DNA of 64,000 bases, taken from contig CAJFCJ010000003.1 in NCBI GenBank assembly GCA_904063045.1, positions 2,156,504 to 2,220,503 on the forward strand. The letters are read 5' to 3'. The stretch is from Dimorphilus gyrociliatus. Lineage: Eukaryota > Animalia > Annelida. Shown in pieces: positions 7,507 to 32,357 of the stretch. The position numbers were made by a program, and so were the translations under genes. The notes below the pieces were generated by a model. The model had not been told where the DNA came from. It saw only the letters and a list, made by a program, of their open reading frames with translations, and made no database searches. Positions within the stretch are counted from its first letter, which is position 1, and each line of letters opens with the position of its first letter.

Positions 7507-10500
7507 ACATTTCGTAAAAAACTGAATTATATATTAAATTTTGAATATTCAAAGGTATCCAAACTGCTTATGTACACGGGTATATTTGTCGGTCAATGAT
7601 ATTTAGTCCTATAATGTTTGCATTAGAATGCGCTCATATGACAACGGAAGACAGAAATCGAAGTATCATAAATCTAAAGTGCAATGCTAAGCTAAATTCT
7701 ATTTTAAATTCAGCGATCTACTTAACAGCGGTTTAATTAAGATTAAGAGAGCGAGTATAGAGAAAGAGGGGGGAGGAAATGTAATGAAAGATGCTGATTC
7801 GCAACTATACGTGTTCGATATTTAAAGCCTTCTTCCCGCTATACTACACTTTAATTTCCCAACAATGAATACTGTTAAATCGCTTATAATTTCCAGTTAA
7901 ATTAAGTCAAGTGGACAAAGTTTCAAGTTCAAAAGAAAAATCTAACCTCCCTTCGATTTATAAACAAGTCAATAAGTTTTATGGAATTTCTTATACAATT
8001 ACACAGTGATGTATTTGTTTTTAAAGAGGATCCAATATTCAATAGTTTCTTCTTACTAACGCTAAAAAAAGGTTGTAGTATTTTTTTTACGATCTAGTGT
8101 TCTTACGACAAAGTTTATTTTATTGGAAGTAAGTCGATGGTGAAACTCTACACTTCATTCTATTCAGTTTTTTGTTTTCTATCCTGCGATAAATTATTTA
8201 TAAAAAACCTAAATGATCTTATGTATTTTGCTACTTGTAATCAATGCTCACTTTTTATTTATTTATTTTATTGATCTCTTCTTGAAAAAATAATTATAAG
8301 CATATTATTCAATATTCTTAAAGTGGCCCCCTTTTTTATATTCTTGTTAATCCTATACCTTGAGGGGAGATCCTTTCATGCTTATTTGATAAACATAAAT
8401 GAGTATTACTTGGACAGGAACCGCTCGCCCAAGCTTTTTAAGAATAAATGAACACTTCAACATGGTTATTAACCTTGCAATCTATGCTATTGTACGAATG
8501 AAAATAGTTGGACCTTTATTGAATTGGCCCTAGTGGAAAGCACAGCTCGCTAATAATACCCATCACATTTTAGGCAAAATAAATAACTACAGAATTGACT
8601 TGTCTGTTTTTCTTCATATTTAAGATATACGAATAAATATACAGTATATACAGTATATATATATTTATATATATATATATATCCTATGTAATTGATCATT
8701 TTAATTGCACTTATGCACTTTACACTAAAAAAGCACCAAAAAGAGAGATCTATTTAACTAAAAATATCTATTTAAATAAAAATTCCTCTTTCAACATATT
8801 TTTAAAGATAAGAGAATTGTAAGAAAATGTGAAAGATTCTTTCTAAAAGTGGGAGTAATATCTTGCTCAATTGACTGCTGTTAAATGTTGCAGTAACATA
8901 CAAGAGAAACGTCAGCTGCTGGGGAATTAAGAGTTTTCACCTTACGTATGCCATGGAGTATTGATTTCGGCGAAAAACCCTTTAAATTCTATGTCTCTGA
9001 TATTTTCTTCTCTTATTTACCTCAAATAAAGAATAAAAAAATAGTATGTTTATTATTCACTTTTTAGTCTTATTTCACTGTTTATTTCTAGTCCAAAGCA
9101 CAAAGCGATGAACGCTAAAGTGAATTTTTTCAATTTACAAAAAATAAGCTGAATTATTATGTTTCTTGAAAAAATTGCTTATCAGAAATGATAAGACAAG
9201 AATGTAATTTGTTTTGACAAGTGTTCATTTCAGATAAAACCACTTGGTTGTTCTCTAGCTCAATGACATTCTTTTCCAAGTACGTTTTTCAAAATGAAAA
9301 ACTACAGATGGCGCTCTTTAAAAATTCTGCAAAACGTTTTTGCAACTAAAAAAATTCATAACAATAAAAGGCTCCTAATAAATGCTAAAATATCGCAGCG
9401 TAATAACGTAGAATCTTAGAAGAAACAACGACTTAACGTTGCTAAACACGAAACCATTTGAAGAAGGCAAGACGTTCCGAACGGTCAGCTGTTTCTAGCC
9501 TGACCTCATTGAGTAAGTACTTTTTCTGGCCAACGAAAATTCTTGTTGTTGAAATCTTTTCGTTTGTTATCTTATTTTCGATGTTATTTACTTTCAAAGA
9601 ATGGAATAAAAGATGTAAATTAGATATTAAAATAGGGACGATGAGGAAAAAGTAAAAAAAATATAGATTTTTCTCAAAATTGCATGGATATTTAATGATA
9701 GAATTACACTGCTGGTTTATATATAAATATAAAAATATATATATACCAGTTGTCACTGATGGAGCCAACTCCCATTGAACAATATTTATATGATTATTAC
9801 ATATACACTGTATATATATATTTAATTCAAATAATTGCTTCGTATAACCTTTCTATGAATTGATTTTTAAAACAAATAATTTTATTAAGAGAATATAATG
9901 AATGAATAATGAGTACTAATGAAATGAAAAGCTAAATCTCAATTAATATTTTTAGATATTAATTCTTATCTTTCTTCTATTTCGTTTGCTTTTAATTTGA
10001 AGAAATAAGTTAAAATCTCCCGCTGAGAAAGAAAAATATTACTGACAGACAATATCTAGTTCTAGTAGATACAAAGGGTAACGACCTCTTCGCACTAAAC
10101 AGAACTGTTAGTTGTTTGTCCCACAAAAAATGATTCTATTAAATAGTTGATTTTCTTTGTACGATTAGTTTAACATAATTAGAAAACTATGTGTTTATAT
10201 TCTATATTAATGATTTTAAATAAAAAATCTCTATATTAAAATAAATATAAAAAAATTAATTGAATTTTAAAGAGATTATTATTTACAGAAGATTAAAAAC
10301 ACTGAATATATTTAGAATAAATCAAATCGGTGTCCTCCAAACGAGATATGTATATCTAATTAGCGAAAAAACTCACAAATAATTGCTTTATAAACAGTAT
10401 ATAGATTTTATATAGATATTATAGTACATACACCAAACCATTGCATATGCTATTCATCTATTAGATATACTTTAAAAGAGGATCAACTTCAAGACTGAAA

Positions 10501-22173: not shown

Positions 22174-23560
22174 ATGACTTCCATAATGGTAAATAGTAAC
22201 CCGGAAATAACTCAACAAGCATATGTCCTTCAACCAGTTGGAAAGTATACCACTAGCTATAATCAGGGAACTTTGGCAAGTTTCCCCTTACAGCAAACAA
22301 TCGCCACTGATCTGAGGGCAGAAGCTCTCGGTACTAAAGCTTGGAAAGAAAATGGTGAATATAAAGTTCAAGTACCATTTCAACTTTTTGCCAAGGAAAT
22401 AACTACTCAGGCTCCTAGGCAGCATGTTAAGTGGGAAAGAAATCATTTAAATTCCTCTTTTCATACCACAATGATTGATAATAATTTTAATAATCCGCCC
22501 ATTTATGGCTTAAATACTGTCTATCTTCAAAATACTAATCAAGTTGGAAATAATTATCTTCTTGAAAATGGAATTGAACCAATTATAGAAATGAATATTA
22601 ACCAAAAGCTCAGAGTTGATTATCCTAATAATAATTCAAACTTGAATGAACGAAACGTTCGAACAATGGAAATGATAAATTGGAGCACAAACATACACGA
22701 GAGTATGAATAAGCTAAAAAAGATTGAACTATCTAACAAATTACCTGATAAAAAGTCTACAAAAATTAACATCAAACGAAAATCTAGTATCACTAGTGAT
22801 CATTCCGAATATGACCTGACCGATTATTGGAAATCTTCTCTCCCTAAAACAACTCCTGTTAATCCTTCGGAAGAGGAGAGAAAGCATATTACGATGCTTA
22901 TGGAAGGAGCTCCCTTAGACAGTATACGTCAAACAATAAACGTAGAAAGAGAGGAAGAAGATATAGTTGGTGATGAAAAAAATCGTCCCGTGCCTCTGTT
23001 AAACTTCGATACGGTATCGGAAAAAGTCGACTTGTGCTTACAAAAAGGAACGGCTAAACTCCAGGTTATCAGTAATTTCATTTTAACTTATATGGTTTTT
23101 AAAAAAATGACTTTTTTCGTAACAGGTGAAGGTACGGTGTGAGAGGGTGGTTCCAATAGATGGAAAAAACAATCTCTATAAAAAGTCTTCCATTATCGTA
23201 ACTCGAGAGATAGACATTGATCTAGAAGTTACAGGACGTCGCAGAAACCTACTCGAGAGAATAAAACGAGCGTCTCATACTGATAAGGTCGGACGAGTTA
23301 AATTATCAACAACTGATACATTTAAACTCTATCGCATCTTCATGGGTATGGCTGAAGCTGGAGAAGAATTGAAAAATCAGAAAATAGCTGTAGAAGAAGA
23401 GGTAGATGAGAGAACTAAAAAGCCCAAAGGTTTAGACCACGACATAGACTTAGAATCTGTTTACAGTGAAGATTATGGAAGATATCATAGAAATGACGAC
23501 ACTTTGAGTTTTCAATCTGCCATTAGTTCTTCCAAATATAAAAAAGACATTTTATATTAG
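22174..23560 (+). CDS. Uncharacterised protein, at least 2 exons
   Basis: A 322-aa and a 144-aa ORF join in phase 0 through CAG|GTTATC...AACAG|GTG (intron about 23063-23125). No family recognised. Confidence 0.6.
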
Positions 23561-23837
23561 CAAAAAGTAAATTATAACAAAATATAAATTATTTTCCTAT
23601 CAATGATATTATAGATTTCTTTGCGTTAACAGTAGCTATAATCTGGAAACTGTGTCACTTCACACATTATTCTCATTAGACGGTTTTATTCTCAATACAA
23701 ATTTGAATACATTTTGAAAAAATCATAATTTGAAATCATAAAACAAAGAATCGAAATACAAACATTTCTTTATTTTAGTAGTAAATCAATTTCCTCAATT
23801 TAGAATACTCAAAAACAAAGACATAAACTTTGAAAAC

Positions 23838-26816
23838 TTAACAACAGTCTCCTGTCTCACAGCAAGTCTTGGCTTTGCAGCAACACTTTCCAGAACAACT
23901 GTTACTTGAACAACACGATGCTTCTACTGAGCAACAACATTTATTAGCTGGGCAAGAAGTACATTCACATTTTCCGGATTGACAGCAGTCTCCTGTTTCA
24001 CAGCAAGTCTTGGCTTTGCAGCAACACTTTCCAGAACAACTGTTACTTGAACAACACGATGCTTCTACTGAGCAACAACATTTATTAGCTGGGCAAGAAG
24101 TACATTCACATTTTCCGGATTGACAGCAGTCGCCTGTTTCACAGCAAGTCTTGGCTTTGCAGCAACACTTTCCAGAACAACTGTTACTTGAACAACACGA
24201 TGCTTCTACTGAGCAACAACATTTATTAGCTGGGCAAGAAGTACATTCACATTTTCCGGATTGACAGCAGTCTCCTGTTTCACAGCAAGTCTTGGCTTTG
24301 CAGCAACACTTTCCAGAACAACTGTTACTTGAACAACACGATGCTTCTACTGAGCAACAACATTTATTAGCTGGGCAAGAAGTACATTCACATTTTCCGG
24401 ATTGACAGCAGTCTCCTGTTTCACAGCAAGTCTTGGCTTTGCAGCAACACTTTCCAGAACAACTGTTACTTGAACAACACGATGCTTCTACTGAGCAACA
24501 ACATTTATTAGCTGGGCAAGAAGTACATTCACATTTTCCGGATTGACAGCAGTCGCCTGTTTCACAGCAAGTCTTGGCTTTGCAGCAACACTTTCCAGAA
24601 CAACTGTTACTTGAACAACACGATGCTTCTACTGAGCAACAACATTTATTAGCTGGGCAAGAAGTACATTCACATTTTCCGGATTGACAGCAGTCTCCTG
24701 TTTCACAGCAAGTCTTGGCTTTGCAGCAACACTTTCCAGAACAACTGTTACTTGAACAACACGATGCTTCTACTGAGCAACAACATTTATTAGCTGGGCA
24801 AGAAGTACATTCACATTTTCCGGATTGACAGCAGTCGCCTGTTTCACAGCAAGTCTTGGCTTTGCAGCAACACTTTCCAGAACAACTGTTACTTGAACAA
24901 CACGATGCTTCTACTGAGCAACAACATTTATTAGCTGGGCAAGAAGTACATTCACATTTTCCGGATTGACAGCAGTCTCCTGTTTCACAGCAAGTCTTGG
25001 CTTTGCAGCAACACTTTCCAGAACAACTGTTACTTGAACAACACGATGCTTCTACTGAGCAACAACATTTATTAGCTGGGCAAGAAGTACATTCACATTT
25101 TCCGGATTGACAGCAGTCTCCTGTTTCACAGCAAGTCTTGGCTTTGCAGCAACACTTTCCAGAACAACTGTTACTTGAACAACACGATGCTTCTACTGAG
25201 CAACAACATTTATTAGCTGGGCAAGAAGTACATTCACATTTTCCGGATTGACAGCAGTCGCCTGTTTCACAGCAAGTCTTGGCTTTGCAGCAACACTTTC
25301 CAGAACAACTGTTACTTGAACAACACGATGCTTCTACTGAGCAACAACATTTATTAGCTGGGCAAGAAGTACATTCACATTTTCCGGATTGACAGCAGTC
25401 TCCTGTTTCACAGCAAGTCTTGGCTTTGCAGCAACACTTTCCAGAACAACTGTTACTTGAACAACACGATGCTTCTACTGAGCAACAACATTTATTAGCT
25501 GGGCAAGAAGTACATTCACATTTTCCGGATTGACAGCAGTCTCCTGTTTCACAGCAAGTCTTGGCTTTGCAGCAACACTTTCCAGAACAACTGTTACTTG
25601 AACAACACGATGCTTCTACTGAGCAACAACATTTATTAGCTGGGCAAGAAGTACATTCACATTTTCCGGATTGACAGCAGTCGCCTGTTTCACAGCAAGT
25701 CTTGGCTTTGCAGCAACACTTTCCAGAACAACTGTTACTTGAACAACACGATGCTTCTACTGAGCAACAACATTTATTAGCTGGGCAAGAAGTACATTCA
25801 CATTTTCCGGATTGACAGCAGTCTCCTGTTTCACAGCAAGTCTTGGCTTTGCAGCAACACTTTCCAGAACAACTGTTACTTGAACAACACGATGCTTCTA
25901 CTGAGCAACAACATTTATTAGCTGGGCAAGAAGTACATTCACATTTTCCGGATTGACAGCAGTCTCCTGTTTCACAGCAAGTCTTGGCTTTGCAGCAACA
26001 CTTTCCAGAACAACTGTTACTTGAACAACACGATGCTTCTACTGAGCAACAACATTTATTAGCTGGGCAAGAAGTACATTCACATTTTCCGGATTGACAG
26101 CAGTCGCCTGTTTCACAGCAAGTCTTGGCTTTGCAGCAACACTTTCCAGAACAACTGTTACTTGAACAACACGATGCTTCTACTGAGCAACAACATTTAT
26201 TAGCTGGGCAAGAAGTACATTCACATTTTCCGGATTGACAGCAGTCGCCTGTTTCACAGCAAGTCTTGGCTTTGCAGCAACACTTTCCAGAACAACTGTT
26301 ACTTGAACAACACGATGCTTCTACTGAGCAACAACATTTATTAGCTGGGCAAGAAGTACATTCACATTTTCCGGATTGACAGCAGTCTCCTGTTTCACAG
26401 CAAGTCTTGGCTTTGCAGCAACACTTTCCAGAACAACTGTTACTTGAACAACACGATGCTTCTACTGAGCAACAACATTTATTAGCTGGGCAAGAAGTAC
26501 ATTCACATTTTCCGGATTGACAGCAGTCGCCTGTTTCACAGCAAGTCTTGGCTTTGCAGCAACATTTTCTAGTGTTACTGCTGTTTTTTTTGCAGCATTG
26601 CTTAATTTCACAGGAAAATTTTTGACAGCATGTTTTACCATAGCAGCCACACCTTTGGGAAGGACAAGATGGGCAATCAGACTGTCCTGATTTTTGTTGA
26701 CCAATAGCTGTACAACGGCATTTACTTGAAGAACAATTTTTGCAATTGCAGCTACAAGAATTGTTTTTTCCAGAGCTTTTTTTTTGTTGAAGTTTCGTTG
26801 GTTCTTTTTCGTCCAT
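23838..26816 (-). CDS. Giant Cys-rich, metallothionein-like tandem-repeat protein (992 aa, about 326 Cys)
   Basis: 83-aa head with CxCxC/CxxC motifs, then 19 copies of a 47-aa unit (16 Cys each) and a 16-aa partial unit. The other five frames are closed in every unit. AATAAA lies about 64 nt after the stop (23769-23774). Confidence 0.8.
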   Translation of the reverse strand: MDEKEPTKLQQKKSSGKNNSCSCNCKNCSSSKCRCTAIGQQKSGQSDCPSCPSQRCGCYGKTCCQKFSCEIKQCCKKNSSNTRKCCCKAKTCCETGDCCQSGKCECTSCPANKCCCSVEASCCSSNSCSGKCCCKAKTCCETGDCCQSGKCECTSCPANKCCCSVEASCCSSNSCSGKCCCKAKTCCETGDCCQSGKCECTSCPANKCCCSVEASCCSSNSCSGKCCCKAKTCCETGDCCQSGKCECTSCPANKCCCSVEASCCSSNSCSGKCCCKAKTCCETGDCCQSGKCECTSCPANKCCCSVEASCCSSNSCSGKCCCKAKTCCETGDCCQSGKCECTSCPANKCCCSVEASCCSSNSCSGKCCCKAKTCCETGDCCQSGKCECTSCPANKCCCSVEASCCSSNSCSGKCCCKAKTCCETGDCCQSGKCECTSCPANKCCCSVEASCCSSNSCSGKCCCKAKTCCETGDCCQSGKCECTSCPANKCCCSVEASCCSSNSCSGKCCCKAKTCCETGDCCQSGKCECTSCPANKCCCSVEASCCSSNSCSGKCCCKAKTCCETGDCCQSGKCECTSCPANKCCCSVEASCCSSNSCSGKCCCKAKTCCETGDCCQSGKCECTSCPANKCCCSVEASCCSSNSCSGKCCCKAKTCCETGDCCQSGKCECTSCPANKCCCSVEASCCSSNSCSGKCCCKAKTCCETGDCCQSGKCECTSCPANKCCCSVEASCCSSNSCSGKCCCKAKTCCETGDCCQSGKCECTSCPANKCCCSVEASCCSSNSCSGKCCCKAKTCCETGDCCQSGKCECTSCPANKCCCSVEASCCSSNSCSGKCCCKAKTCCETGDCCQSGKCECTSCPANKCCCSVEASCCSSNSCSGKCCCKAKTCCETGDCCQSGKCECTSCPANKCCCSVEASCCSSNSCSGKCCCKAKTCCETGDCCQSGKCECTSCPANKCCCSVEASCCSSNSCSGKCCCKAKTCCETGDCC
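23841..26567. repeat. Coding tandem array, 141-bp unit x about 19.3, nearly identical
   Basis: GACAGCAGTC recurs at 23981, 24122, ... 26519 (exact 141-nt spacing). The single internal variant is GGA/GGC (Gly). Confidence 0.97.
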
Positions 26817-27440
26817 AGTTTCTGGAGTAATGATTATGTTTTACTGAAGAGACTGTTCTTTTATTATTTTTTCACGTTTTCACATGGCAGCTGTTTTTTG
26901 TTCTTTTTCACACGTCCTGTGAAATTTGCAGTTCTTATCTCGTTTTTTAAAGCTTTTTTATGACTTTAAAATCAGATTTTATCAATGTGAATCATCCCAA
27001 TTTCACATTTTATGAATATTGCAGTCGGCACTTTTCATTAGATAAATTTTGGTGATAGGCAGTGATTAAGTTTCTAAGCATAAATTTTTTTTAAAAGTTT
27101 ATTTGTTGAAATTGTGATAGAGACCTGTAATCACTAATTTATCTGTATTGCCTCTGTAATGTGAAAATCTTTTTTCACAACTATATATGAACACTTTTAT
27201 GTGAATAACGATGTTCTCTGTAGCCAATGTTTCATATCCTTAATGCTATAATGCTTTTCTTTGCTTTTGATTAATATTTTAAAAAGATATTTTGTCATTT
27301 TTTTTAAATAACGATTTCTTTTTTTTTGTCAGAAACATAGTAAATACGTTTATTTGTAGAAGTCCAATAGACGCTAAATTTAAAGTATGAAAACAACGAA
27401 ATGGCGAACGCTGTAAAGCGAATCAAGTTTACTTAAATAA

Positions 27441-29390
27441 TCAACATCTAATCATTGACGTTTTAAAAGAGCATTTCTGTTTACTACAGAACGAATAATT
27501 TTCACCATATTTTGAGTAATCTGACTCCGCTCGTCTTCTGTTGCAGCACGTATTGCATATATTTTCAAAACTTTATCCCCATGATTAAAAGATCCAATGC
27601 ATCTGTGATTTCACAGGTGTACTAATTAAATATGTATTGTAAGAATTACCTTAACCACATTCCTCTATAAAATGGTGCATGCTCACTATCCTGTTTTGAA
27701 GAATTAATTAATTAACAAACAATTAATCGTATGTTTCTAGACAATAAATTGAATTATTAATATTTAATAAAAATGTAATTGTTGAAAATGAATATTGTAG
27801 TTATAGACCATATTCACTGATGATGTCAGATATATGTACTCACCAAAATGCCTTCTATACATTTAATAGAATAATGACCATCTTTCAATGAAAAGAGCTT
27901 CTGATTACCATCTTCAACAATAGCTGAATTTAGTTGGCCTTTAAAAGTAAGTTCACGAAATTAGTACAAATTAAATTATTTACTTTATTACCAAAAACTT
28001 CGTATAAAACATGAGGCTTTGTCTTCCGTAAGCTTACTGGAAGATCTCCCAGAACTAAATTGTGAATATTGGTAAGTATAATTCGCATACTTATGTCGGG
28101 TTGAGAAAGTTTCTTGGGTGAACTTGCAGATTTCCTCTAAATATTAATGAAATAAACTCAACGTTAGTTGATTAAAAAGAAATACTTTTTTTATTGGTTT
28201 TTTTTCATCTCGTACTGGATGATTTTCAGCTCTACTTTGGGGATCGTTTTGAGAAAAAATTTCTCTTTTCCCAGCAAAAGAATTAAAGGGAGTGTAAAAC
28301 AGTTGCCCATTTGGGGGCTGTCCAGGAAAACGTAATGCATCTCTCTGAAACAAGATAATTTCTTATCCAGTATTTTAGTTCCGTGTAAATTACCTTCTCA
28401 TCGTTTAGACTTCTTCTGGAGATCTAAATTTTACGATTCCATGAATTAACATAGATATAATCAAATTGTAGAATAATAGTATTTACTTGTCTAGTATAAT
28501 CATTCAAAGGCATTCCGTTCGATGACGAATGGGGAAAATTATTCGAAGGCGTTTGAAGCTGGGAGATTGCGGATATTTATAAGCAATAGGTGTTTTCAAG
28601 TCTTTGACTTACGACATGCATCTTTGTTTGATAAGGTTGATCATATGATACATCAGAATTTGCCGGAGAAACGTAGCCAACCATCTGAAATTTTAAATAG
28701 AAAAGAAAATATCGTAAACAATATATATGTAATAATATACGGGTTGAGAAATATAGTTTGAATTATAGCATCCTTTTCTTTCGTAGTCTTCATGTAGAGT
28801 CTGTTTCGTTTCAATAATGCATTAGATATTCATTAAATATATTCTAGAATAAGACCTGAGATTCCGGAAAATGTGACAGTTGTTTACGCACGACGTAACT
28901 CATCTAGACAAAGAAATTATAATTGCATAAAAAGTTTTATAAAATCTTACTGATGCATTTCTCTTGTCTTTTACGTTATTTGAAACGTGCTTATTTTCAA
29001 ATTTGAGACCATTACGTATATTCTGCTTTGGTTATTACTAAGTTAAATAAACAACTCTGAAGGTCACTAGAACTAACCATATTATTATCTTGATGAGATG
29101 TCTCAACAATCCCTGATGAGGAAAGTTTATTCTGATGAAATTTCGCAAATTGACGACTTTTAGTTTTCGAATTTTCACTGTTTCCGTTAGGTATTTCCAT
29201 TGGAGTTTTTATCATAGCTCCAGTTTGCTCTTTTTGGTTCAAGAGTTTCGTACAGACTAAAAACCTAATATTAATTAAATGCCTTACCATTTTCCTTCTT
29301 ACTAGAATTCTGCAAAACTGGATATCTCTGTGGATTTCTCCTTTGGAATGATAAATTTAGCACTCCTAATTTACCATTGGAACCATTATG
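27441..29390 (-). CDS. Uncharacterised multi-exon gene with a Cys-rich C-terminus; 5' end uncertain
   Basis: A chain of short open exons with GT-AG ends: MVGYVSPANSD..; LQTPSNNFPH..; ISRRSLNDEK; RDALRFPGQPP..; RKSASSPKKL..; GQLNSAIVED..; DSEHAPFYRGMWLR; CIGSF..KICNTCCNRRR..FCSKQKC..RC*. Confidence 0.6.
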
Positions 29391-29548
29391 AGCCCTTTTG
29401 AGTTCACTATGCCTTATGTAAAGGAAAGTCAATTACAATATCATTAGAAAGTGACGATTAATATACAAAAAATAACATACGATAGCATATCTTTCAAGAA
29501 CAATTTAAATTTGTTCCAGAGAGCAAATTCTTTTTGATTTAAATTTCA

Positions 29549-29565
29549 ACCACCAGATGGTAGCA
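29549..29565 (+). promoter_or_regulatory. CTCF-like motif in the divergent orphan/PISD promoter
   Basis: ACCACCAGATGGTAGCA. Confidence 0.45.
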
Positions 29566-29811
29566 GTAAAATGGGACATCGTAAAATGAGGCCTTAAATT
29601 GAATATATTTTGTAAAACAACGTGCAAACATCAACTTCGACTTTCTAAGTATAAATATTGAAAATCTTTGCAAGTTATATTATTATTTAATTTGGATATA
29701 GACATATTGTTATTTGGCTTACTGGAACTTTGTTATGAAATATTGTTCTTCAAAAATTACTTAACAAAGGAGCGACAATATCACGATATTTCCTGATTGA
29801 GTTCACAAAGT

Positions 29812-30897
29812 ATGATGTTTCGATTAGCACCTTATATTGTAAGGATAGGTAGGGGGAAACTTTCACCAGTTTCTCCTAATTTCCAATCAGCCATGAGGCA
29901 ATTATCTCAATCTCCTAAAGAAGAACGTTTAATTTTTAAATGGTTCAAACCAATGTCTTTTGGTATCCTGGGATGTATTTGTTATCTTCAATTCTTTCAT
30001 GTGGTTGAAAGGGAACAAAAGAAGTATGATATGGATTTACAATTTGAGGGAATTAGCGTTAAATTATATAAATTTTTACCACTATCTACATTATCCCGAG
30101 TCTGGGGTTTTTTAAATAATTTAACTTTGCCCGTCTTTCTTCGTGAGCCTATTTTGAAACTGTACATCAATACATTTTCCTGTAATCTCTCTGAAGCAGC
30201 TATAAGGGATTTGACCTATTATAAGAATCTTGCAGAGTTTTTTAGAAGGAAACTTCGTCCGGAAGTTCGTCCCATTGACAAAACAGCTGATCTTGTGTCA
30301 CCATCAGATGGAAGGATTTTACATTTCGGCTCATGTTCAAATGGTAATTTAGAGCAAGTCAAAGGCGTCAAATTCAGAATATTTGCCTTACTTGGCAAAA
30401 CAGAGTTGGATCAACGTTTAAAGGAGGAAAATGTTGATTTGTACTATTGCACAATATATTTAGCACCAGGAGATTATCACCGTTTTCATGCCCCTGCAGA
30501 CTGGCAGATTACATTTAGGCGACACTTTCCAGGAAAGTTACTGAGTGTAAGTGCTATTATAGCTCGAAAAGTTAGGGGATTATTTACCATTAACGAAAGA
30601 GTAGTCTACACTGGACATTGGAAGCATGGTTTTTTTGGAATGATTCCAATTGGAGCAACAAACGTTGGCAATATAAAAATCTACCACGATAAAGAGTTGC
30701 GAACAAATTTACCAAAACGTTTCTTGATGGATCAGAATCCTGAATCAACAACTTCTGTTGAGTTTAAGAAGGGGGACCACTTCGGTGAATTTAATTTAGG
30801 CTCTTCTATTATTTTGGTTTTTGAAGCTCCCAAAAATTTTAAATTTGCCGTTAATAGGGGTGAAAAAATAAAAATGGGTCAAAAATTGGGACAATAA
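29812..30897 (+). CDS. PISD: Mitochondrial phosphatidylserine decarboxylase proenzyme, intronless
   Basis: PLSTLSRVWG; FFRRKL; SPSDGRIL; IYLAPGDYHRFH; GATNVG; FNLGSSIILVFEAP autocleavage site. First ATG is at 29812 (the ORF track starts at a TTG). Confidence 0.95.
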   Translation: MMFRLAPYIVRIGRGKLSPVSPNFQSAMRQLSQSPKEERLIFKWFKPMSFGILGCICYLQFFHVVEREQKKYDMDLQFEGISVKLYKFLPLSTLSRVWGFLNNLTLPVFLREPILKLYINTFSCNLSEAAIRDLTYYKNLAEFFRRKLRPEVRPIDKTADLVSPSDGRILHFGSCSNGNLEQVKGVKFRIFALLGKTELDQRLKEENVDLYYCTIYLAPGDYHRFHAPADWQITFRRHFPGKLLSVSAIIARKVRGLFTINERVVYTGHWKHGFFGMIPIGATNVGNIKIYHDKELRTNLPKRFLMDQNPESTTSVEFKKGDHFGEFNLGSSIILVFEAPKNFKFAVNRGEKIKMGQKLGQ

Positions 30898-30922
30898 GCG
30901 TTTGAATGTATTTTCTGCTCTT

Positions 30923-32357
30923 CTAGTTATCACGTACACTGGACGTGGGATCAGTGATACGAACGAGTAACTTTCGGACACAGCCACTAAATTCAGATTT
31001 TATATCCTCAATTAATCGTTTTTCGTATATTTCGTCATATATGTCTTTGATAGAATCGAGATCAGTCTGAAATATTAAAGGAATACATATTAGATGATAA
31101 TATATTTTTTTCTAACCTCTGAGTGCTGAATCAATAGTCTGAAAAAAGACTCATCATCTTCATCCTTCCCACAGAGTGTGCTGTGCAGTCTCTCTGCCCA
31201 ATAAGTTAACGGATCTCTGGCATACGCCACAATTGTCTTGAATGCAGTGCAAATATCTCCCGAAAACTGATTATCCAAAGAACGCTCGATTGTCATTTCG
31301 GCAATGTGTTCGAATTGATTAAAAGTTGCCCGTAATTGACACCACGACTTTGAGACTAAAATATTTATGAAGACTTCTTCATTTTTATCAGAATTTGTCC
31401 CTTCTCCATTCTATTTGTAAAAAACATGAAATTTGAAAATATTTTAATGCTTCAGATATCCCGAGGAAAAAAGATATCTAAAGAATTTTATATGACGGTT
31501 ATTTTTTTACTAAAAGCTGTTTTGTTCAGTCTTTTTCAAAATCAAAAAAATAATTTGCCCTTGTTTAGATTTTAGTTAAGTTCACAAAATAAAACAATTT
31601 GTTATTAAATTAATAGTAAAGAATATCAATATACATCATATAAAGCTTTCGCATCCTCTTCCGCCTCTGCTTCATTCACTTCATTTGACTGGCTTCTTTT
31701 GCCTTCTAATAAGCCAAGCATAAGCTTTTGATTGGGACCACTGGTATCACTTTTTATCATATATTCCAAAGGTGTTTCATGAACTGTAATAAAGTATGTT
31801 TAGATAGAATCCAACGTACAAATTGTTCATAATCTTTGAAAGCAATAAATAAATCACAAGGCTATTATAACTAGAGAATTGAATGCTCACTTTCCGCATA
31901 AGCTGTTTTCAGGTCCTCCATTTCCTCAGCTGTTCGCGCACATATAATTTCAGTTAGCCAAACTTCGTTAGTTCCTATATTTTGCAGAGCTTTTTTTGTG
32001 TATTGAGCATCCCAGAGACGTCTGGGAGTCAAGAGGGACACACATAGATCCTCAAAACTACCCATTAATTCGTCCTTGAGGTCATCAGTAAGATCCTGTA
32101 AATTGTACAAGAATGCAAAACCATGATCTAAATAAAGAAAAACTTACATTATTATATTCTTCAGAATATTTTTTCGATATATCCTGGAGCTGAGAATTTG
32201 AATGTTCAGATAATAATTTAATAAGTCGGTACTCGTCAGTACCCAGACCTCGGAATGCTCTTTTAAAATCTTTGGCCTTCTCCAAAGTATAGCCATCATT
32301 TTCAAATTTTGAATTAGGCTTGATTGATGGCCTAAGTTTTTTGTTTTCTAGATCCAT
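30923..32357 (-). CDS. Annexin with four repeats, multi-exon
   Basis: RGLGTDE..DELMGSFE; NIGTNE..SDTSG; GEGT..FSGD; IKSEFSGC. Last exon ends ..RDN* at 30923. Confidence 0.9.

Follow-up and report, generated by a model that had tools for sequence, protein, structure and literature searches.

A transcribed, intronless orphan gene of Dimorphilus gyrociliatus with a putative metallothionein-like product of 992 amino acids

Whether a very long open reading frame (ORF) composed of near-identical cysteine-rich repeats is a gene at all, and what its product might do, is the question raised by a locus of the annelid Dimorphilus gyrociliatus. The locus is part of a stretch of 64,000 nucleotides (assembly GCA_904063045.1, contig CAJFCJ010000003.1, positions 2,156,504 to 2,220,503), which was analyzed as a whole and is referred to as the window; all positions given below are those of the window. 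D. gyrociliatus is a miniature marine annelid that grows readily in culture, possesses a compact genome that has been sequenced and has served for a long time in tests of metal toxicity. The locus was found to be a gene and not merely an open satellite. On balance, this orphan intronless gene probably encodes a cytosolic multimodular metallothionein (MT)-like protein, which would serve as a metal buffer or sink.

The gene is a single-exon ORF on the minus strand (23838 to 26816 in the ORF list) with 992 codons and a TAA stop. The residue count of the protein (100.6 kDa) yielded 326 Cys (32.9%), 166 Ser and 111 Lys, and neither His nor Trp was found. The ratio of Lys to Asn is 2.5 (111/44), about 20% of the residues are charged, and there are 22 Pro (~2%) and 3 Arg. 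Counting overlapping motifs, so that each CCC also contributes two CC, a total of 39 CCC, 139 CC, 62 CxC and 21 CxxC was obtained. Lys and Ser are placed between the Cys, and Lys residues adjoin Cys.

All parts of the ORF are read from the minus strand. The translation begins with a unique head of 83 amino acids and 15 Cys (26568 to 26816), which contains the only Tyr and the only Phe of the protein, followed by 19 full units of 141 bp or 47 amino acids with 16 Cys each (23889 to 26567) and a partial 20th unit of 16 amino acids (23841 to 23888). Tandem Repeats Finder described the array by a period of 141, 19.4 copies and 99% matches. The protein sequence is identical in all 19 full units. The Cys pattern of the unit is x1 CCC x4 CC x4 CC x4 C x C x2 C x4 CCC x5 CC x4 C x2, in which 12 of the 16 Cys sit in CC or CCC clusters. 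The stop codon (23838 to 23840) occupies the position of the Gln codon of the unit (CAA to TAA) and the array ends there, so that the C-terminus is set by a nonsense change within a unit. An AATAAA poly(A) signal is located 63 nt past the stop (23769 to 23774, minus strand). An earlier reading of the letters alone by a model, here called the sequence-only reading, had described the same arrangement of head, 19 units and partial unit with the same numbers of Cys, about 33% Cys without aromatic residues or His in the repeats, five closed remaining frames and an AATAAA after the stop. The recount agrees with all of these points, with 19 to 104 stops in each of the five other frames.

Within the head, residues 42 to 58 are similar to the unit core (KSGQSDCPSCPSQRCGC compared to QSGKCECTSCPANKCCC, 47% identity over 17 amino acids). 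This diverged copy indicates that Cys-rich coding sequence existed before the present array arose.

The 992 open codons are in themselves weak evidence for coding, since the period of the array is a multiple of three and a single open unit keeps all units open. The coding status was instead derived from the unique Cys-rich head, the ATG of which stands in a good context (A at −3, G at +4), from the presence of RNA, from the purely synonymous variation and from the excess of Cys codons. Among the full units, variation is confined to two DNA sites, both synonymous, and the partial unit carries two additional synonymous changes besides the change from CAA to TAA. Apart from the stop, all four variable sites of the array are synonymous third positions (P ~0.0013, given that, of all single-base changes the unit could undergo, only 19% preserve the amino acid). 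TGT and TGC account for ~33% of the codons, compared to ~3% by chance in a hand estimate from the base composition.

For the analysis of transcription, four public runs (X1 to X4) were aligned to the region from 26430 to 30930, leaving out the array. Run X2 is DNA and yielded one colinear contig of 30.8 kb at a depth of 260. Runs X1, X3 and X4 were identified as RNA, because the upstream gene is present in them with all GT..AG introns removed. The contig depth is a rough measure of abundance, sample conditions are given in coded form, and the contigs carry no strand information. The repeat unit formed a circular contig ("goes back 140") in each of the three RNA runs, as it did in the DNA run, and the array was thus found in independent DNA and RNA runs. 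In X1, the head is covered from 26584 to 26783 at a depth of 147, compared to 49.5 for the upstream gene and 244 for the decarboxylase gene, and 95% of the sampled words from 23560 to 24000, which span the stop and the 3′-flank, are contained in this run. The sequence-only reading had made its case dependent on transcription, and both head and units are represented in the RNA runs.

Between 26945 and ~27320 the RNA depth was zero in X1 and X3, which indicates a separate transcript instead of read-through from the upstream gene. The variant base at 26529 makes up 61% of the RNA depth in X1, matching its presence in 12 of the 20 units of the assembled array, so that the RNA appears to derive from an array of this make-up. 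Normalized to the upstream gene, the depth of the unit was ~129 in X1, 2.1 in X4 and 0.8 in X3. This range of more than 100-fold indicates that the gene is strongly regulated between samples.

The 5′-end was examined with regard to a possible upstream exon, since the sequence-only reading had pointed to a putative splice acceptor just upstream of the ATG. The motif TTACTCCAG is indeed present at 26822 to 26830. The X4 contig (26731 to 26944) runs colinear with the genome through the ATG, the putative acceptor and a 5′-untranslated region (5′-UTR) of at least 128 nt (26817 to 26944, minus strand), and no splice at TTACTCCAG was seen in this contig. None of the runs X1 to X4 gave a joint at the head. 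An in-frame stop is located eight codons 5′ of the ATG, and together with the unspliced contig it leaves no sign of an upstream exon for a signal peptide, which the earlier reading had named as evidence against itself. The absence of a signal peptide, also claimed there, is borne out by these two observations and by the hydrophilic N-terminus of the head. An alternative spliced 5′-exon is possible.

Two of the synonymous variants follow a partial higher-order arrangement of three units (423 bp) in the order GA GA GC. Because of this partial order, expansion or homogenization of the array by block-wise unequal crossing-over is suggested. The number of units was compared with the read depth in X2, in which the k-mers of the unit (26430 to 26569) reached a depth of 7668 to 8500, compared to 260 for the single-copy flank (26570 to 30930). 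The depth ratio suggests about 30 unit-equivalents compared to 19.4 assembled copies. The excess could stem from an array collapsed during assembly, from another array of the same unit elsewhere, from a length polymorphism in pooled worms or from a GC bias (~43% GC in the array, ~32% in the flanks). At ~30 units, the protein may be longer than 992 amino acids.

The disagreement between depth and assembled copy number would also be expected from a very young, expanding coding minisatellite, which is transcribed with little or no function and the length of which is partly an artefact of the assembly or the population. The 99–100% identity of the units fits this explanation, as do the orphan status described below and the lack of a record of the product in public assemblies. 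It does not fit the synonymous nature of all four variable sites or the diverged head, which retains 15 Cys and a unit-like core. The gene furthermore has its own promoter interval and a poly(A) signal, its RNA is regulated and at times abundant, and the array recurs in independent DNA and RNA runs. A minisatellite of this kind is thus considered very unlikely.

MTs are defined by a Cys content of about 15–30% and a set of Cys motifs (PMC8476144). The Cys content found here is just above this range, and the CC, CCC and CxC motifs fit the definition (PMC8476144), in line with the claim of the sequence-only reading that the composition is typical of MTs. Aromatic residues and His, which are scarce in MTs, are represented by 1 Tyr, 1 Phe, 0 Trp and 0 His. 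MTs are intracellular proteins without a signal peptide, and the N-terminus together with the RNA contig over the ATG is consistent with such a location. The product differs from MTs in its molecular weight, since MTs mostly comprise less than 100 amino acids compared to 992 here. Accepted multimodular MTs also exceed this size, with up to 399 amino acids. This is the longest MT that was found reported, and the earlier statement that the known multimodular forms have several hundred residues at most agrees with it.

As a metallothionein-like molecule, the protein would resemble beads on a string, in which a string of 16-Cys modules, ~19 or more and all identical, comes after the older, diverged Cys-rich head. 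The array would have been made very recently, or kept uniform, by unequal crossing-over. Each module would wrap one or two metal-thiolate clusters and, at the usual ratios of MTs, bind roughly 5–6 Zn or Cd ions, or more in the case of Cu(I). A single chain could thereby take up a number of divalent ions in the region of 100 and serve as a metal buffer or sink of high capacity, while its thiols would provide some redox buffering as well. The gene and its transcription are shown directly, whereas the binding of metal, the number of ions bound and the role of the protein in the worm are inferred.

A more far-reaching version is possible, although its probability is put slightly below that of its being wrong. 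According to it, a polypeptide of at least 100 kDa (perhaps ~150 kDa at ~30 units), made of a previously unseen 16-Cys CC/CCC module, would bind at least ~100 ions. The length of the array would change fast by unequal crossing-over and provide a tunable sink for a harbour-dwelling worm. The protein would exceed all other MTs in size by a wide margin and belong to a family specific to its lineage.

The 326 thiols per chain, the cytosolic location and the high expression in one RNA sample could also be explained by a thiol reservoir, i.e., a store of cysteine or sulfur, for example in embryos, or a bulk redox buffer, for which metal binding is incidental. Thiolate clusters typically show the ordered spacing of CCC, CC and CxC with Lys at the flanks that is present here, which argues against this function, and a protein dedicated to Cys storage in this way is not known to us. 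This explanation is regarded as quite unlikely.

The searches for homologs were negative throughout. In Pfam, the whole protein and its first 130 residues (the head and one unit) matched no family at E ≤ 1, including the Metallothio_* models. A word-indexed search of 5.8 billion clusters with the whole protein returned one unrelated bacterial protein only, and the same type of search with a piece of 318 amino acids gave no match. An exhaustive phmmer search with residues 1 to 224 against 1.84 billion representatives yielded one unrelated secreted repeat protein (E 7e-5), and a PDB sequence search at E ≤ 10 returned nothing. No gene for the exact product is on record in public assemblies, and the protein itself was not returned by the searches. 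Public protein sets thus seem not to include the protein of 992 amino acids, and as far as these sequence comparisons reach, the Cys-rich gene is an orphan.

Secreted disulfide-rich modules such as granulin were considered as well. The protein has no signal peptide and no match to a Pfam profile, and AlphaFold2, run without an alignment on the head and two units, gave a mean confidence (pLDDT) of 47.8 and no confident disulfide-knot fold. Thioneins usually give no confident fold in their apo form.

A number of points weigh against a metallothionein-like protein. No significant match to a sequence-defined MT family (Pfam Metallothio_*, annelid wMT) was found, and since there is no homology to any MT family, the assignment is made by composition and motifs alone. 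The RNA differences could reflect stage, sex or tissue instead of metal, and short-read contigs without strand information cannot show one full-length mRNA of 3 kb. The intact frame over the array is little evidence of selection, as the units are near-identical, and the unit number is uncertain with regard to the depth in X2. The look-alikes found by a protein language model are keratin-associated proteins (KAPs), at scores below 0.8 that are also reached by shuffled sequences, and a size of 100 kDa is unlike MTs. Finally, no metal-responsive element (MRE; TGCRCNC), which together with MTF-1 makes transcription metal-inducible in many animals, was identified between 26817 and 27450. In the whole window this motif occurs less often than by chance, and the MT genes of C. 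elegans likewise have no MREs (PMC4101491). The earlier MT interpretation is thus retained in part. Transcription, the lack of a signal-peptide exon, the MT-like composition and motifs and the size speak for it, whereas MT homology and a promoter MRE were not found and the number of units is uncertain.

The size and the language-model clusters would be in favor of a structural role within the cell, in which disulfide cross-links harden the protein. It would then work like the ultra-high-sulfur KAPs or the Cys-rich proteins of the sperm tail and mitochondrial capsule and be limited to one cell type, sex or stage; the strongly sample-dependent expression would also fit such a protein. In the ESM Atlas, a feature search performed twice returned keratin-associated and other low-complexity clusters with scores of ≤0.75. 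Since shuffled proteins reach such scores, the likeness is taken as compositional only. Neither Keratin_B2 nor Keratin_B2_2 (PF01500/PF13885) nor any other family was matched in Pfam. With only ~2% Pro, 3 Arg, a high Lys content and no CCxP pentapeptides, the composition differs from that of KAPs. To our knowledge, D. gyrociliatus has no keratinized or chaetal structures. The lack of a signal peptide and a composition unlike that of KAPs make the disulfide-crosslinked structural protein, which the sequence-only reading had offered as its alternative, less plausible; it is considered unlikely, though it stays in consideration.

The promoter of the putative MT-like gene was assigned to the interval of about 375 bp between the 3′-end of the upstream gene on the same strand (~27321) and the start of the Cys-rich transcript (26945 to 27320, minus strand). 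The heptamer TGTGAAA/TTTCACA was found in six copies within ~300 bp 5′ of the ATG (26878 to 27179), compared to ~20 in the other 61 kb. Three copies are located in the promoter (27001 to 27007, 27160 to 27166 and 27173 to 27179) and three in the 5′-UTR (26878 to 26924). Four of the six form two inverted pairs (26906 to 26924 and 27160 to 27179), and a shorter pair, AATGTGAA/TTCACATT, represents a third inverted pair (26984 to 27009). This cluster is a candidate cis-regulatory element. In addition, two ACGTG cores are present at about 26880 to 26915. A scan for bacterial-type promoters and terminators, which is irrelevant for a eukaryote, gave nothing above chance.

The window has a GC content of ~31% and many introns of ~50 nt. 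It includes genes for TMEM161, phosphatidylserine decarboxylase, cyclophilin, an AdipoR-like HlyIII protein, GT92 and a G protein-coupled receptor, and no second Cys-rich ORF was found in it. The upstream neighbor (~27321 to 29611, minus strand) contains 13 short GT..AG introns in the RNA contigs of three runs, with lengths of 47–68 nt and one of 153 nt, and its RNA contigs end at ~27321. On the other side, two overlapping ORFs of 322 and 144 amino acids without a Pfam family (22174 to 23560, plus strand) run towards the Cys-rich gene and approach its 3′-end; they probably belong to one gene with an intron or a frame change. An apparent RNA joint from 26874 to 28715, with 9 additional letters, was dismissed, since an unrelated abundant contig matches there by chance over 19–21 nt. 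This contig has a depth of 124–640 in three runs and meets the window only by 19–21 AT-rich letters at 26856 to 26874 and 28715 to 28735.

Multimodular MTs are used to study the gain of capacity through added domains, and the reported records are at ~400 residues and ~120 Cys. A gene that is transcribed and encodes 326 Cys in modules identical to each other would extend the size range of MT-like proteins 2.5-fold. It opens the questions of how many ions are bound per chain, how the chain folds and whether the repeat number varies and follows metal exposure. Given the absence of homologs, it also bears on the de novo origin of MT-like genes, and repeat-rich Cys genes of such kind may be overlooked in other genomes.

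Within the library of papers searched, none linked Dinophilus or Dimorphilus to metallothionein. Among annelids, the earthworm proteins wMT-1/2/3 comprise 49–109 amino acids in two domains and are encoded by genes with four exons (PMC12783039); they have no detectable similarity to the Dimorphilus protein. The cytosolic Cys-rich protein CRP of Enchytraeus buchholzi is reportedly non-canonical and Cd-induced, with about 251 amino acids in eight tandem repeats of 31 amino acids with 9 Cys each. By this description it shares the tandem-repeat organization, the cytosolic location and the annelid origin, and it is set apart by a much shorter length and a different unit. The ultra-high-sulfur KAPs share a Cys content of more than 30%, the repetitiveness and the lack of a signal peptide, and they provide the nearest language-model clusters. 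They are vertebrate proteins rich in Pro, Arg and Gln with CCxP pentapeptides, which the Dimorphilus protein does not have, and it has no Keratin_B2 match.

The motifs recall those of the subfamily 7a Cd-metallothioneins of Tetrahymena, which are Cd-induced, have up to about 162–191 amino acids and consist of modules ending in CXCCK (PMC1808422). As in the Dimorphilus protein, most of their Cys are in CC and CCC, the build follows a hierarchy of modules, and repeat accretion is the proposed mode of growth (PMC1808422). Since there is no sequence relationship to these ciliate proteins, the likeness is regarded as convergent. The CCC motif was also noted in a CdMT of Eisenia (PMC1808422).

In terms of length, the largest MTs that were found reported are those of tunicates. 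OdiMT2 of Oikopleura dioica has 399 amino acids and 123 Cys, its gene has introns, and a seven-repeat allele is somewhat longer (PMC8283569). BscMT1 of Botryllus schlosseri has 365 amino acids and 105 Cys (PMC8476144). Tremella TmMT is also listed with the longest MTs. Populations of O. dioica vary in the number of MT repeats, and recombinant repeats bind Cd and Zn (PMC8283569, PMC8476144). Both tunicate proteins are Cys-rich tandem-repeat proteins like the one described here, but they consist of 12-Cys domains of the CxC type, whereas the Dimorphilus units are identical, follow another motif grammar and form a chain ~2.5 times as long.

The multidomain MTs of the door snail Alinda biplicata belong to the gastropod MT family. 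9md-MT and 10md-MT have 287–319 amino acids and 81–90 Cys (319 and 90 for 10md-MT) in domains of 9 Cys, and their response to Cd was determined by experiment (PMC7084494). In both Alinda and Dimorphilus the gene is intronless, and near-identical tandem Cys-rich domains follow a divergent first domain. The Cd-type proteins of Alinda also share a Lys content well above that of Asn, the lack of His and a proportion of charged residues of ~20–23%. Unlike the Alinda proteins, the Dimorphilus protein is known from its sequence, has no homologs and consists of 992 amino acids with 326 Cys in an unrelated, CC/CCC-rich 16-Cys module. In both cases the array is taken as a gain of capacity through domain multiplication, and with its unrelated module the predicted Dimorphilus protein is ~2.5 times as long as the longest MT found reported (399 amino acids).

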